NCBI GenBank assembly: GCA_001949185.1
Contig: BDGG01000001.1
Span: forward strand, 2,807,324-2,871,323
Length of the DNA: 64,000 nt
Source of the DNA: Ramazzottius varieornatus
Lineage: Eukaryota; Animalia; Tardigrada
Reading direction: 5' to 3'
The notes below the pieces were generated by a model. It was not told the origin of the DNA and did not search any database. It saw only the letters and a program-made list of their open reading frames with translations. The stretch's first letter is position 1, and each line of letters opens with the position of its first letter. Positions 3,048 to 9,687 of the stretch are shown here, piece by piece. Position numbers and translations under genes: made by a program.

Positions 3048-3919
3048 TCATTCATTTGATCTAAAACCTCGTCGAACCACGCATTCTAAGACAGTAACTA
3101 TCGTCGACTCCTCTGGGTTTCTCGCCAATGTTGACTCCTGTTAGCACATCGACGCAGAAGCAGGTGCCGGTTCGCTTGGCTAGAGTTCCAGGTCGGCATT
3201 GCACTGTGCTGTAGGTACCATCTCGCTCACAGGAAGGCACAAATGTTCCGAGAGCCCGCTCTGAAAAATAAATTCAAGCAGTTGGACAAAGCGGTCTCGA
3301 CAGTCCGCTTCAAGGTTTTCAGTTGGGACGTGGGCAGATGAATTGTGGCCGATCGTTTTCTCAAGTGGCGCAGACTTTGTGTTAACAACAATGAGTACGT
3401 GCGCCACTTCGGGTGCCGATCTGGTTCAACACATTACCCTTCGTCGCAGCTACTACTCTAACGTCAAAGTTCCCCGCTCTTCTAAGTCCAAAAGCGAGAA
3501 CTGATATATCTAGTGAGAACGATGCTTACTTGTAGTCAGGGCCTCGTAGAAACGGTTAGGACAGTCGCAGTGCAGTGGGGTGGAAGGCGACACAGCTTTC
3601 GGCTGGTAGATCTTCTGTCCGTGGGGTTCCACGCAGAACGGAGTTCCAGAACGGTTGTGCTGAAGGCTGAGGAAGGCACCTTGGTTGTCACATTGTGGGA
3701 TCCAAGCCGAAGGTCCTTGCACTGCTGACTTCAAAGCTTTCTCGCGAGCTGCCTCACATAGTCCAAACTTGCTTGTGTTCGCCGTCACGGAAGAAATCAC
3801 TGCGAGAAATCCAAAAACCTGGAGACAACAGCTCTGCTTAGTACTCTCGACGGTCTCGGCACTGTCAAAAGGAAAAAAACCGAAGGAAAACTTGCCATCA
3901 AGAATATGGATTGATCCAT
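3048..3919 (-). CDS. Secreted protein with two thyroglobulin type-1 domains (thyropin-like protease inhibitor candidate); 3 exons: 3919-3896, 3818-3530, 3260-3048
   Basis: Spliced product begins with a signal peptide, MDQSIFLM|VFGFLAVISSVTA. It continues CEAAREKA..WIPQCDNQGAF..FCVEPHG..C and CPNR..FVPSCERDGTYSTVQC..CFCVDVLTG..C, the Tg1 pattern (P-x-C-x-x-x-G, QC, CxCV). Exon phases are compatible. Confidence 0.85.
3324..3440. repeat. Intronic palindrome family A copy (thyropin intron 2)
   Basis: gggacgtgggcagatgaattg..gatcgttttctcaagtggcgca-N27-tgcgccacttcg..cgatc. Confidence 0.85.
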
Positions 3920-5081
3920 GCTGGAGTGTGGAGTTGGAAGTCTTCGCCAAAAAAAAGAAAGGGTCCGTAATGCGAATGGTGAAGTCGAGAGAACTGAACT
4001 CACTATGCCGCGAAGAGCAGACTTATGAAGAGTCACGAAGACCTTCAAGAACCATAACACGAAACGAGAACGTTGCCTTCACCTGACCGACTGAACTTGA
4101 ATCGTTTTCTTGATTAATGAACCTTGATGGGCGTTAGATGACAGGCTTGCTTCTGTTCTCGATGGATTCTGCGAGGCAGATGAACAACAATAACATTTTA
4201 AGGTCGCAGAGGCCTACCAATGGTCCTTCAGGCGACTACAGCTGACCATTGTTTTGTTGTTCACGCGCAGATACCCGCAAGGTCCTCACTCTAGCAGAAG
4301 CATCTCTCTTCAAAGACTCGGGCTTCCCCTGATGCAATACGCGTACACGTTATGTCCAAGCTATGAGAGGAGAAGGCTGTTTTCGTGCGTCGCGATAATT
4401 CAGCCAAGGACCCTGCCTTCACTTACCAAACAAATCCAAACAGATAACTTAAGTTAGCATGACTACAGTACACGTACATAACCGGCAAAATCCAACCGTT
4501 TGTTCCATATTCCAAATCGATTGAACAGACAATTTAGATTTCAGAAAGGTAATCCATTGGAATTTTTAAACACGTGAAAGTGTGTTCTTCTTTCAGCTTC
4601 CGTGTTCTGAAATGCACTGTATTCCCTCGATAGTTCTGCGAATAACGTCATCACGCCCGTAAATTACACCCGCACTGGTATCGCTGATTGTTTGATTGTC
4701 GCCCTCATTACACTTGACTGGGGGTCTTTGATTGAAGGTATGATACTTTCTGTTCCCCGCCGGACAATATTTACCACGACAGTCACGTGATTCGCAGAAC
4801 TTTCGAGGGAATACAGTAAATCCTTGAAACGAAGCGCCACCTGTAAATTACATATCTCGTCACAGATGATATCGGTACGAATACCGTACGATATTGATCG
4901 GTCCAGGCACCACCGCCTGAAGCATTGAATACACTGCAAGTCTGCAACAGAGAACCCGACATTGCTGAGCAAGCAATCGGAAATCGACTTTGTGCACACG
5001 TACAAGGCTTCACAGACTGTCAGTCGGAAAATTCAATATTTTCCACAGGTTCTTTTTGGAAATTCCCCAAGTGATCGCAAG

Positions 5082-8000
5082 ATGGCCGGCTACTCTGAAA
5101 CCCGTGAAATCAACCGTGAGGATCCTACTCGCTTCTTCACCCTCAGCAGCCACGACCAGAAAGGCTTCGACGACGACAACAATTTCAGCCAGAACCGACG
5201 ACGCATCGGCATGTCTGACGACCAGATCCTTTCCGGAAATGACATCCACAGCTGGTATCGGCATTTGACGGGCGACCAGCCACCGATCACCCTGCGAGAC
5301 TTCAGCTCTTTCTTCGACCGCCATCCAGGAAGTACCTGGCATCGGGATCAAGACGGCACCTTGGTCATCCGCGAAAGCAGCACCAATAGCTTCTCTGGTC
5401 GACCGGAAGAAAAGCAGATTGACTACTACAACTTCCGTCCATGGGCTAATCAGAGAGAAGACCGTCAACCCTACTTCGATTACCAGCCTCAACAAGACTT
5501 CCACCGCTTCGATCGTGAACAGTGGGGCGGACGTGATACCGGCTTGAACTTCGGCTACAATACGGTAAGTGAAAATTTAACTTTTCTTTTTGAAATAAAG
5601 AAGATATCAATAAAAGAAGTCGGAGGAAATCAGTCTGCGTTATTTCGTTCAGAAACCGACAAAAGAAAGCTCGTTCAATGCACAGTGTTACCAAATAATT
5701 TAATTTGTAGTTCTCGAACTACCAACAGGACTTCCCCAACCTGCAGGAAAGCGAGTTTTTGACTCGTCGCCAGTATGAAAATGAAGGTCGGGATCGTCAG
5801 TTTGGAGGCCAAAACCAGTCGGCCTTCAGTCGCTTTAGCCAAGAACGTTGGGGTGACATGGACAGCGGGTTGCGTTTCCGTCAAGATGCGGTAAGCGAAG
5901 CAAACCTGATTGCTTCCGGGTATGGAAATTCCGCAGCAAAATCTCAGAATTTTATCAAGAGGCATTTCTGGTCGCTAGTTCCCTGGCCTAACAAACTACA
6001 ACACGAGTGGCTTCCAGCAGGAAGCTCAAGGTGGCGGATTGTTGAACGAAATACGCAACTTCGACTCTGGAACGCTGCGACATGTACGTTGATCTAACTT
6101 GATTATTTGATTGAATGGTCAGATGCTTTGGTCTTATAGGTTTCTCGAGACGATCAGTTCAACCGGGACCAATGGGTCAATCGTGATACTGGCTTCCAGT
6201 CCAACAACCGAACAGATTTTACTCAGCCTCAGCACCATACGGCGAACGCCAACCTAGAGTTCCATCCAGAGCTGATGAACGAAATCAAGAACTTTTCTTG
6301 GAGATCACTGCGACATGTAGTACCGCTCTCGGTTTTTAAGTCAACTTCAGAAAATATGGAAGCTGTGCATTTTCATGTTTTACAGGTTGCGCGCGATGAC
6401 CGGGATGGCCAACAGCGCTCGAACTATCGCGACGCTGGTTTCCAATTCCGTCAGAACACCGTAAGTCAAATACAAGTTCCTCAATGGAAATCCTTGAACA
6501 GTACATTTCATAGCTTACACACTGAGCCATTTTTTGCCATTTTGGAATCCTTTCTCAGTTTTAATTTGAATATTTTGGTTCCAGAATGGATTTTCGATGT
6601 ATGCTTTCGTGTTATTTTGCAGTTCGACTTCCAGCAAGAGTTCCCTCGATACGGTCAAGACCAACACTTCAATACCCAACAGAATTTCAGCACCCATTTC
6701 CAACGCGGGGATGTGGATCGGGATCGTCATTACGAGTACGTGCGTCAACAAGATCAGCCTCAAAATACGGTACGCAAAGAACTTGCTTACTCTTACAGCA
6801 CTCTCATGATTCAATCTGTTCACGCTCTTTATTCTTCATGTCATTCCAGTTTACCAACTTTCAAGAGGCAGCTCCTCAAAATTACTACGACACCTACACG
6901 CCTTTCCGCTTCGGGCGCAACGACCAGTTCGACTACCGCGACACGGTGAGCCGACAACAATTCCAAAGCGGAAACGACTATGGCCGCTACGGAAACATGG
7001 ACAACAACCACCGCTTCGACCGCCAGCCTGAGCAGCCATCTTCCAACTACGGTATGGAACATCAGTTCGACACCCAGCGCTTCAGCATGGATCGTCAGCC
7101 GTTCTACCCGACTTTCCAGCCCGAACAACGCAACTACAGCTACGGAACGGAACACACCTCTCAGCTGAAGCGCCTCCACCACGACGAACCCCTCGGAGGT
7201 CGTCGACAGCCTTTCGGACAGCACTTCGAGCGGAGACCTCATTTCGGACATCGACAACGTCAACAGCGCAGTCGCCCTCCAAGCCAAGGAGACCAGTGGA
7301 TGCATACCGACCTCGACAAGATCGACACGCACCTGTTCGATGATGAAGGGCGCGAACGACAGAACAGACGAGGATTCCAATCCGAGCAGAATACGGTAAG
7401 CGTAATATTCGTACTCAAGATTTCCGACGAAAAAACCACCAAGACGTAAATGAGCGAAAATCCTAATTTTTTGCTACCCTTTCACAGTTCTTCGACCAAC
7501 GTTACTCTCAGCCACGTTACAACCAAGAACATCAAGGAAACTACGGATCGAACTTCCACTCTGGAGAGAATATTGTGAGTGACGACCGCGCTTTGGTCAA
7601 TGAAAACAAATTCAACGTTTGTAGGAATGATACGTATAGCTCTATCGGGTGTGGCTGACATGTGCGAAATCTCAGTCAGGATTTCTAACTTGTCTTCTTT
7701 GCAGTTCAACAGCCTGCAGGGCTTCTCAGGACCTCAACACGATCACTTCATCGGTCGCCATTTCGAATATCAGGGTCAACCTAACTCTCAACAATACGGT
7801 AGAAACGACTGGGATAACCCACACACTGGCTTCCGGTTCCAGCAAGATATGGTAGAGAAAAACAAATTTACTCTGACATCGCGACTTCGCTGTGAAATGA
7901 TACGTCGGCAAATGATTGCACATGGCGCACACTTTCAGTCAATAACTATGAAAACGTGCACCACTTGAGACGATGACCATGCTAAGTCCATCTGTCGACG

Positions 8001-9687
8001 TCTCAGATTGGTTTTATTTGGTTAATCCCGGACTCCTACTGTTATCCCACATGGCAGTTTGCGTTTCTTTTTATCAGGCCCAACGAAACGACCAGCGCTT
8101 CGGCCCCGATCAGATGACGCACCAATTCGACACGCAACGCTTCAACATGGACCGTCAGCCCTTCCAAGAATCCTGGACGAGACACTTCCAGCCCCAACAG
8201 CGAATGTCCGACACCATCGAGCACCCGATTCCGTTCACTCGCCTGCAACATGACGAGCAGATGGGATACCAAGGACCTTCATTCTTCGCTGGAGGACAGA
8301 ACTTTAACCAATGCCAACAGTACGGCGGTGACCACCAGCGTCACGCTGGACGTCACCGACGCCAGCAACATGGTCGTGCCAGAGCCCAACGCGAGCAATG
8401 GGTCCACACCGATTTGGACAAGATCGACACGCACCTCTTCGACTTGGACCTCGGTCACCATGAGCGACAGCAGTTTGGACGTGGCAACCAGTCTCATCAG
8501 AACACTGTGAGCATAATCTTTCCCGTTTCTCTACTTGGGAGGTGCTGAGATTTCGCCAGACAAAGTCTACCAGATCATTTGTCGAAGTGGCGCGCGTTAC
8601 CAGCTGATATTACTGATAACATGCGCCACTTGAAATAACGGTCTGGTCGAGTATGTTTGCCCAGCTCTCATTTGTCTGAAGAGCTGATGAGCCGATGCGT
8701 TCTAGTTTTCTGGCCAGTGGGGGTACCCGCAACAACACCGCGACGACTTCTTCAACAACCAACCCCAGCACATGACCAACTACCAAACCGGAAACCGTGA
8801 TCGTCATTTCGACCAACGCCAAACACATTTCCAACAAGGCACCCAGCAAGGATGGGACGATCGTCATTTCGGTTTCCAGACAGGTCAAGCCATGGTAAGC
8901 AAGACTAAGTCTGCATCTGTTACCGATGGGGAAAAATATCTGCAAAACCTCCACAATCTTAGATGAAGTTCTAATTTCCGCTATAACTCGCAAACCGAAA
9001 ATTCATTTTTATAATTCATTAATTTTCCAGGTCGACCAACGTGACTGGATGAACCAGCAGTCCTTCCGTGGCCAACAACAAGACCAGCACTTTGGAGGTC
9101 GCCAACAGCACAGACCTGCCTTCTTTGGCGGACAGCACTTCGAGCACGGTCGTCAGTATGGTGTAGACCACGAGCGCCACATCAAACGCCGCCTACGTCA
9201 AGAACGCAACCGAAAGCGCGAGCAGGAAGAACAGTGGGTCCACACCGACTTGGACAAGATCGACACGCACCTTTTCGAGCTGGACCTAGGCCGTCATGAA
9301 GGACAGTACGGCATGAACCGGAACCAGCACGGCGGACAACGCTACCAGAACGAGTACTACCGTGGCCAGGACTTCTACCAGGGTCAAGGACAAGGGCGTT
9401 ACTCTCAGCACTCCAGTGGAGGACTTCGTGGTGGCTTTGAGCGCTATCAGACAGGTAACCAAAACTTCTAAACAGTTTTCTAATATTAATCCTACTGGTG
9501 TTTGAAAGCTTTCCTGGCAAACGTACGGTAGTGAATACTAATGAGAGGTATTTTTGTTTCAGGTGGACATGGTGGCAACTGGGGACGTCACAACGATGCT
9601 TACAGGAAGAAGGTGAACGATCTTGGCGGTCTTGGCCAGATCATCAACGCGCTGGCCACTGATGTGCAGCACGTCGTGCCTCAGTAA
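5082..9687 (+). CDS. ~1,000-aa low-complexity Q/N/G/R/F/D/Y/H-rich repeat protein with N-terminal LOTUS/OST-HTH-like domain; 13 coding exons
   Basis: Exons start near 5082, 5711, 5979, 6140, 6386, 6623, 6850, 7488, 7705, 8078, 8706, 9031 and 9563, with GT-AG boundaries and consistent frame. Stop TAA at 9685-9687. Internal repeats: WxHTDLDKIDTHLF x3, HQFDTQRFxMDRQPF x2, NEIxNFxxxxLRH x2. The domain call is by eye; the gene model is more secure than the domain call. Confidence 0.85.
7901..8004. repeat. Intronic palindrome family A copy (repeat-protein intron)
   Basis: acgtcggcaaatga..tggcgca-N27-tgcaccacttgaga. Confidence 0.75.
8570..8668. repeat. Intronic palindrome family A copy (repeat-protein intron)
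   Basis: ccagatcatt..aagtggcgcg-N27-tgcgccacttgaaataacggtctgg..tttgccca. Confidence 0.85.

Follow-up and report, generated by a model that had tools for sequence, protein, structure and literature searches.

A repeat-rich, probably disordered orphan protein of the tardigrade Ramazzottius varieornatus as a candidate condensate scaffold with a doubtful LOTUS-like segment

The low-complexity domains of the FUS/hnRNPA1 type and the N-terminal region of Ddx4 are built on aromatic and arginine residues arranged as "stickers and spacers". Amphipathic helix-forming sequence abounds in CAHS and LEA proteins, and their grammar is not known to be rich in aromatic residues and arginine. In C. elegans, MIP-1 and MIP-2 (EGGD-1/2) combine LOTUS domains with disordered regions and organize P granules (PMC8331183). 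The LOTUS domain itself has a winged-helix outline of three helices and two strands, and its most conserved activity is the binding of G-rich or G-quadruplex RNA (PMC7498356). Here we describe a gene at positions 5082 to 9687 of a 64,000-nucleotide stretch of the R. varieornatus genome (the window; contig BDGG01000001.1, 2,807,324 to 2,871,323, forward strand). An earlier note had proposed that it encodes a lineage-specific germ-granule scaffold in which a LOTUS domain is fused to a long disordered region. The disordered sticker-and-spacer scaffold is the plausible part of that proposal, and the LOTUS domain is suggestive and unproven; the headline combination of LOTUS and germ granule is not established, and the protein remains an uncharacterized orphan. 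The reading that we tentatively favor, at not quite an even chance, is that the product is lineage-restricted, intracellular, mostly disordered and multivalent, and that it serves a membraneless compartment as scaffold or client.

The coding span begins with an ATG at 5082 and closes with a TAA ending at 9687 on the forward strand, and the limits first assigned to the gene were thus correct, with 13 exons between them rather than one open frame. All 12 introns are of the GT-AG type with pyrimidine-rich acceptors; 11 are in phase 0 and the last is in phase 1, and the reading frame is kept throughout. The exons sum to 3,114 nucleotides, or 1,037 codons and a stop, with a G+C content of 54.2% against 39.1% in the introns. 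The gene is genuine and single copy and its product is non-secreted, on an exon model that is predicted and derived from the sequence. The exons of this model, all on the forward strand, are as follows.

5082 to 5564, forward strand: exon 1 (161 residues in translation), with a polar N-terminus, a candidate small folded segment and then the onset of low complexity
5711 to 5890, forward strand: exon 2
5979 to 6083, forward strand: exon 3
6140 to 6316, forward strand: exon 4
6386 to 6460, forward strand: exon 5
6623 to 6769, forward strand: exon 6
6850 to 7395, forward strand: exon 7
7488 to 7574, forward strand: exon 8
7705 to 7851, forward strand: exon 9
8078 to 8506, forward strand: exon 10
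8706 to 8894, forward strand: exon 11
9031 to 9454, forward strand: exon 12
9563 to 9687, forward strand: exon 13, with a glycine-rich linker, then the C-terminal tail, where the protein is at its most hydrophobic (30% aliphatic), ending in VNDLGGLGQIINALATDVQHVVPQ, and the stop

The introns at 6317-6385 and 6461-6622 have lengths that are multiples of three and contain no in-frame stop, and isoforms retaining them may keep the frame.

What kind of chain does the gene encode? Searches were run exon by exon, and composition statistics were computed within exons and then pooled. After a more ordinary N-terminal segment, the protein continues as a low-complexity stretch of about 940 residues. Pooled over the exons, glutamine makes up 14.2%, arginine 11.0%, glycine 9.3%, aspartate 8.8%, phenylalanine 8.4%, asparagine 6.7% and histidine 6.0% of residues, while lysine (1.1%), cysteine (0.1%) and the aliphatic set A, I, L, M and V (10.4% together) are depleted. 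This agrees with the Q/N/G/R/D/H-rich, aliphatic-poor character first ascribed to the chain. Arginine outnumbers lysine ten to one (114 against 11), charged residues (R, K, D and E) account for 25.5%, and Q and N together for 21%. Past residue 100, the gaps between aromatic residues average 6.5 residues with a coefficient of variation (CV) of 0.73 within exons, compared with 0.91 +/- 0.075 in shuffled controls, and only 0.2% of 2,000 within-exon shuffles were equally even. The even spacing of F, Y and W that had been noticed by eye is therefore real and non-random, and aromatics spaced more uniformly than random are the sticker-and-spacer criterion. Together, the aromatic spacing and the excess of arginine over lysine support the view that this chain has the sequence grammar of phase-separating scaffolds.

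The description "prion-like", which the earlier note had also used, fits loosely. The criterion of Michelitsch and Weissman (2000) reportedly calls for at least 30 Q or N in an 80-residue window together with depletion of charged residues; here, no exon exceeds 21 per 80 and charged residues make up a quarter of the chain, so the classical count fails. Charge blocks were not found in exons 1, 7, 10 and 12 (charge-segregation z from -1.5 to 0.1), where the charges are well mixed. The dipeptides FG (z = 1.2) and RG (z = -1.3) are not enriched; those that are enriched are HF, YG, GR and FD. A Ddx4-type region of FG/RG dipeptides and charge blocks was rejected on these grounds, as was an FG-nucleoporin on the FG value, and an Argonaute-binding GW protein of the GW182 type was rejected since the 16 tryptophans provide only one GW and four WG. 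A charge-hydropathy plot did not discriminate, since a genuine LOTUS exon also falls on its "disordered" side.

The region beyond the N-terminus is Q/R/G-rich and of low complexity, as first described, but it is not featureless, because conserved and repeated motifs lie inside it. The largest repeats are three long units of 120-140 residues, which share 51-55% protein identity in a three-way alignment and about 71% DNA identity. Each has an arginine-rich tract near its end, followed by the motif QW(V/M)HTDLDKIDTHLF. The long units and the copies of this motif are located as follows.

7030 to 7395, forward strand: long unit copy 1 (second part of exon 7), HQFDTQRF-MDRQPF, then the arginine-rich tract, then QWMHTDLDKIDTHLF
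8078 to 8506, forward strand: long unit copy 2 (exon 10)
9031 to 9454, forward strand: long unit copy 3 (exon 12), with the strongest basic cluster, ERHIKRRLRQERNRKREQ, at 9172-9225
7294 to 7338, forward strand: invariant motif QW(M/V)HTDLDKIDTHLF, copy 1, from the repeat comparison
8396 to 8440, forward strand: invariant motif, copy 2, from the repeat comparison
9232 to 9276, forward strand: invariant motif, copy 3, from the repeat comparison

Comparison of the three copies of the core HTDLDKIDTHLF, which spans 12 codons, shows synonymous differences at four codons and non-synonymous ones at none, whereas the 23 codons that flank it carry 9-18 non-synonymous differences per pair of copies. 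Because the core changes only synonymously while its flanks have changed, we conclude that HTDLDKIDTHLF is under selection at the peptide level and is not the product of recent gene conversion. Its hydrophobic positions are spaced 4-3-4-3, which makes an amphipathic helix the probable structure. The polar positions are all invariant too, which suggests recognition by a specific partner. Since the core is invariant despite the synonymous changes, it is probably a docking motif.

Shorter repeats are found at the exon ends. The motif W-x-x-(R/D)-D-(T/S)-G-(L/F)-x-F-x-Q-(N/D)-T occurs in at least six copies, either internal or at exon ends and mostly directly before an intron, and a second motif with the consensus LxNEI(R/K)NF....LRH occurs in two copies.

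5523 to 5564, forward strand: exon-end motif, copy 1, with an intron directly after it
5849 to 5890, forward strand: exon-end motif, further copy
6173 to 6214, forward strand: exon-end motif, further copy
6425 to 6460, forward strand: exon-end motif, further copy
7810 to 7851, forward strand: exon-end motif, further copy
8853 to 8894, forward strand: exon-end motif, further copy
6039 to 6083, forward strand: LLNEIRNFDSGTLRH at the end of exon 3, copy 1 of 2 of direct repeat family D3 (70% DNA identity)
6272 to 6316, forward strand: LMNEIKNFSWRSLRH at the end of exon 4, copy 2 of 2 of direct repeat family D3

These exon-end copies and the LxNEI(R/K)NF....LRH pair indicate that the gene grew by exon duplication, and the duplication that gave rise to the repeats is old.

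The gene is best read as lineage-restricted and as an orphan in the libraries searched. Exons 1 and 10 have no paralogue outside the gene in the 55,842,812 bases (200 contigs, the window lying on one of 9.33 Mb) of its own genome; one weak match there was rejected as a paralogue since it lies in an unrelated gene. Exons 1 and 7 had no match among proteins of similar length, a length-limited search in which full-length orthologues of about 1,000 residues were out of reach, and exon 10 had none among Joint Genome Institute (JGI) metagenome contigs. Against 1.84 billion representatives, a library that did not return the query's own protein and from which tardigrade proteomes may be missing, exon 1 gave a single match. 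This was a receptor tyrosine kinase of 2,418 residues (P0001), which shares a beta-hairpin motif of 24-25 residues, PGxWFHxDGxGxLVI, with residues 72-96. The kinase was rejected as a domain homologue since the similarity is local and limited to 25 residues. Its ectodomain consists of repeated modules without a Pfam family that carry GDRxPGVWFHEDGSGKLVI.

Lineage restriction in an extremotolerant host, high hydrophilicity and probable disorder would also fit a desiccation protectant, one that gels or vitrifies reversibly on water loss in the manner of CAHS proteins rather than serving as a constitutive granule scaffold, and the 6% histidine could confer sensitivity to pH. We think this explanation very unlikely. 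The chain has no similarity to any described family in Pfam, it lacks the wealth of amphipathic helix-forming sequence that marks CAHS and LEA proteins, and its aromatic- and arginine-rich grammar sets it apart from them.

How might such a chain work in a membraneless compartment, whether as its scaffold or as a client? The chain is a well-mixed polyampholyte (R, D and E) on a background of Q, N, G and H, with a phenylalanine, tyrosine or tryptophan every 6-7 residues. We propose that the evenly spaced aromatics and the arginines could provide weak, distributed cohesion, and the three invariant HTDLDKIDTHLF helices, perhaps together with the N-terminal segment, could provide specific docking of one or more partners. 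Disorder, condensate formation and docking are what we infer here; the gene structure, composition, spacing, repeats, selection on the motif and absence of relatives from the libraries searched are what we observed.

Several points weigh against this scaffold or client reading. First, the Q/N count falls short and charge blocks are absent, so phase separation is not guaranteed. Second, the disorder of most of the chain is a probable reading of its composition and low AlphaFold confidence. Third, self-association of the motif finds no support in an ESMFold2 complex prediction with three copies of a 48-residue motif segment (score 0.00), though this is no counter-evidence either. Finally, the absence of relatives may partly reflect library coverage.

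A candidate for a small folded part, a short alpha/beta segment that is less hydrophilic than the rest, lies near the N-terminus, and it is here that a LOTUS domain had been proposed. The peptide on which that proposal rested is present, at residues 40-96 (window 5199-5369).

5199 to 5375, forward strand: candidate winged-helix or LOTUS-like segment (residues 40-98), with modelled helices at 46-51, 53-63 and 71-80 and a hairpin at 84-88 and 94-98

Single-sequence AlphaFold gave a mean predicted local distance difference test (pLDDT) of 39.8 for the whole of exon 1 and of 58.6 for residues 32-107, the latter a trimmed model with three helices and a beta hairpin. When this trimmed model was compared with 350,542 PDB chains by Foldseek, ranks 1-14 were all LOTUS domains of Drosophila Oskar, with expectation values (E) of 0.026-0.07, probabilities of 0.75-0.93, template modelling (TM) scores of 0.39-0.45 and 19-23% identity. 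Over all comparisons of the trimmed model with Oskar LOTUS, identity is 19-24% across 55-69 aligned positions. The LOTUS domains of TDRD7 and MARF1 were lower in the list, at E about 0.7. The Oskar scores are weak and fall short of the usual threshold. The unbiased search returned the same protein, Oskar, that the earlier note had named. The model of the whole exon returned only noise and no LOTUS match, and geometry-only scores of the trimmed model were insignificant and tied with generic winged helices. Thus, the fold check proposed at the outset came out divided: the trimmed model is winged-helix-like with Oskar on top, but the E values, the low pLDDT and the silence of the whole-exon model hold it back. 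Matches in the ESM Atlas, including EF-hand-like rows at 0.75-0.77, were discarded because the best score, 0.78, was within the range of shuffled sequences. A small winged-helix-like fold for residues 40-98 is, on these models, close to an even call but somewhat short of one.

After the hairpin, residues 99-107 are coil in the trimmed model, so the extra C-terminal helix that an eLOTUS domain requires to bind Vasa/DDX4 was not found there, and a longer model has just a four-residue helix at 121-124 with a pLDDT below 50. This agrees with the earlier statement that a Vasa-binding alpha-5 extension is not obvious. Since no helix follows the hairpin, the segment, if it is LOTUS, would be of the minimal kind that does not bind Vasa.

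At the level of sequence, the domain was not recovered. Using hmmscan, we found no Pfam family in exon 1 at E<=10, including PF12872 (OST-HTH), which is the answer to the profile test that the earlier note had suggested for its LOTUS call. There was no Pfam family in any exon tested and no Tudor, OSK, NYN or RRM domain among them, as had been stated for OSK and Tudor. A six-frame scan of the genome with PF12872 (E<=10; curated cut-off 23.8 bits) returned two other exons, at 38.6 and about 30 (29.7) bits, which were confirmed as OST-HTH, and it did not return exon 1.

2969867 to 2970058 of the contig, forward strand: LOTUS exon by PF12872, 157 kb downstream of the gene
2573919 to 2574098 of the contig, reverse strand: LOTUS exon by PF12872, 238 kb upstream of the gene

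PF12872 does detect this genome's real LOTUS exons, so the candidate, if it belongs to the family at all, must have diverged much further than they have. BLASTP of the candidate against these two exons gave no match, a comparison without power since the two real LOTUS exons miss each other too. A MAFFT three-way alignment with them was not meaningful. By sequence, the PDB returned only antibody light chains (E>0.3) for the candidate, and one of the real LOTUS exons itself reaches only E 0.26 there. The LOTUS call therefore has the Oskar ranks on its side and the profile search and whole-exon model against it, and true membership of the family is in our view unlikely, if still a serious prospect on the models.

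Both LOTUS exons, the only two that the genome scan returned, share a contig with the gene, perhaps by coincidence or because the first look of the scan was limited. The open reading frames near them had no Tudor, NYN or RRM match. Just downstream of the LOTUS exon at 2969867-2970058 is an exon for a Kazal-type protease inhibitor (contig 2971363-2971686, forward strand; PF00050, E 7e-09).

If the LOTUS call were correct, the protein could be an organizer of germ granules or nuage like Oskar or MIP-1/MIP-2, with a highly divergent minimal LOTUS at residues 40-100 as the part that binds G-rich RNA or a helicase and the disordered region as the driver of condensation. The three helices and hairpin of the trimmed model have the LOTUS topology (PMC7498356), Oskar heads the Foldseek list, and LOTUS domains with disordered regions alone are a known architecture (PMC8331183). 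However, PF12872 passes over the segment while scoring well on the real LOTUS exons, the pLDDT is low and the geometry no better than that of generic winged helices, the full exon-1 model has no LOTUS match, the eLOTUS/Vasa-type extension is lacking, and Tudor, OSK, NYN and RRM domains are missing. In addition, according to a 2026 review, the tardigrade data point to germ cells that are specified by induction and not by inherited or localized germ plasm (PMC13120685), which weakens an Oskar-like role but not a role in nuage. We consider such an organizer rather improbable. Less probable still is a bolder version, in which a tardigrade organizer of the Oskar, Bucky ball or MIP type was built independently from a diverged minimal LOTUS and the exon-duplicated sticker-and-spacer chain of about 940 residues. 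Its three invariant helical motifs would recruit a conserved partner, and the protein would be a phylum-unique nucleator of ribonucleoprotein (RNP) condensates in germ cells or under stress.

The geometry-only comparison also bears on a different explanation, that of a nuclear protein associated with nucleic acids, in which a generic winged helix would bind DNA or RNA and the product would either shuttle or reside in a nuclear body. Winged helices lead the geometry-only matches, including those of ORC2, Cdt1, MarR, KAT6A, SAMD1 and the eIF3 PCI, mostly from DNA- or RNA-associated proteins and complexes. The basic cluster ERHIKRRLRQERNRKREQ and two weaker arginine-rich tracts, each directly upstream of an invariant motif, could be nuclear or nucleolar signals. 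Motif copies 2 and 3 run on as LDKIDTHLF(D/E)LDL (8411-8455 and 9247-9291), and the pattern I-x3-L-x2-L-x-L in them may be a CRM1-type export signal, since its hydrophobic spacing fits the class 1a pattern. Copy 1 (7309-7350) lacks the last two hydrophobic positions of this spacing. On balance, we rate a nuclear role as unlikely.

A secreted product, such as a structural material of cuticle, claw, stylet or eggshell matrix whose signal peptide lies on a separate exon, was weighed as well. Histidine, glycine and aromatics are enriched, as would be expected of it, and the acceptor-like sequence ttttccacag (5040-5048) continues in frame and without a stop to the ATG at 5082, which would permit an upstream exon. 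However, the protein starts with polar sequence (best mean over 9 residues on the Kyte-Doolittle scale, 0.03), and in the 1.1 kb between the first exon of the divergent neighbor, which ends near 3950, and 5082, no upstream ATG frame (3950 to 5048) has a proper hydrophobic signal-peptide core, as judged by hydropathy and frame inspection rather than a dedicated predictor. The absence of a signal peptide, as first reported, thus stands, and the upstream signal-peptide exon that the earlier note had named among the findings that would refute it has no plausible candidate in that interval. Moreover, 25% charged residues and 21% Q/N are unlike such materials. A secreted structural role therefore seems extremely improbable for this gene.

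The divergent neighbor is a thyroglobulin type-1 repeat gene (exon at 3510-3950, reverse strand; PF00086, E 8.6e-09), with which the gene at 5082-9687 has a promoter region of about 1.1 kb in common. Rfam gave no match between 3500 and 10500.

Why would a scaffold or client of this kind matter? If the N-terminal segment is truly LOTUS, the gene would encode a phylum-specific protein of LOTUS and disordered region, and it would offer a handle on the way tardigrades, lacking oskar, put together germ granules or other RNP granules. Even without LOTUS, the gene would be a clean natural case of a long sticker-and-spacer chain interrupted by strictly conserved docking motifs, in an animal whose known stress biology already relies on lineage-specific disordered proteins.

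How does the protein compare with the systems it most resembles? The LOTUS domain of Drosophila Oskar (PDB 5A49, 5A48, 5CD7 and 5NT7) and the trimmed model have a topology of three helices and a beta hairpin in common, and in both proteins this segment precedes a long disordered region. If the N-terminal call is right, it also resembles MIP-1 and MIP-2 in joining one or more small LOTUS-type domains to long disordered regions, with Tudor and nuclease domains absent; however, the MIP proteins have two recognizable LOTUS domains, whereas here there is one doubtful segment and no sequence relation. With CAHS, SAHS, MAHS and Dsup it shares lineage restriction, hydrophilicity and probable disorder, but it has no sequence similarity to them, is rich in Q, R, D, F and H rather than in helix-forming K, A and E, and it is far longer than they are and built of repeated exons. 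The likeness to FUS, hnRNPA1 and Ddx4 lies in the even aromatics, arginine far above lysine, prominent phenylalanine, polar Q/N/G spacers and lack of a signal peptide. It differs from Ddx4 in having neither charge blocks nor enriched FG and RG, from FUS-type domains in being far more charged (25%), and from all of these in carrying strictly conserved linear motifs.

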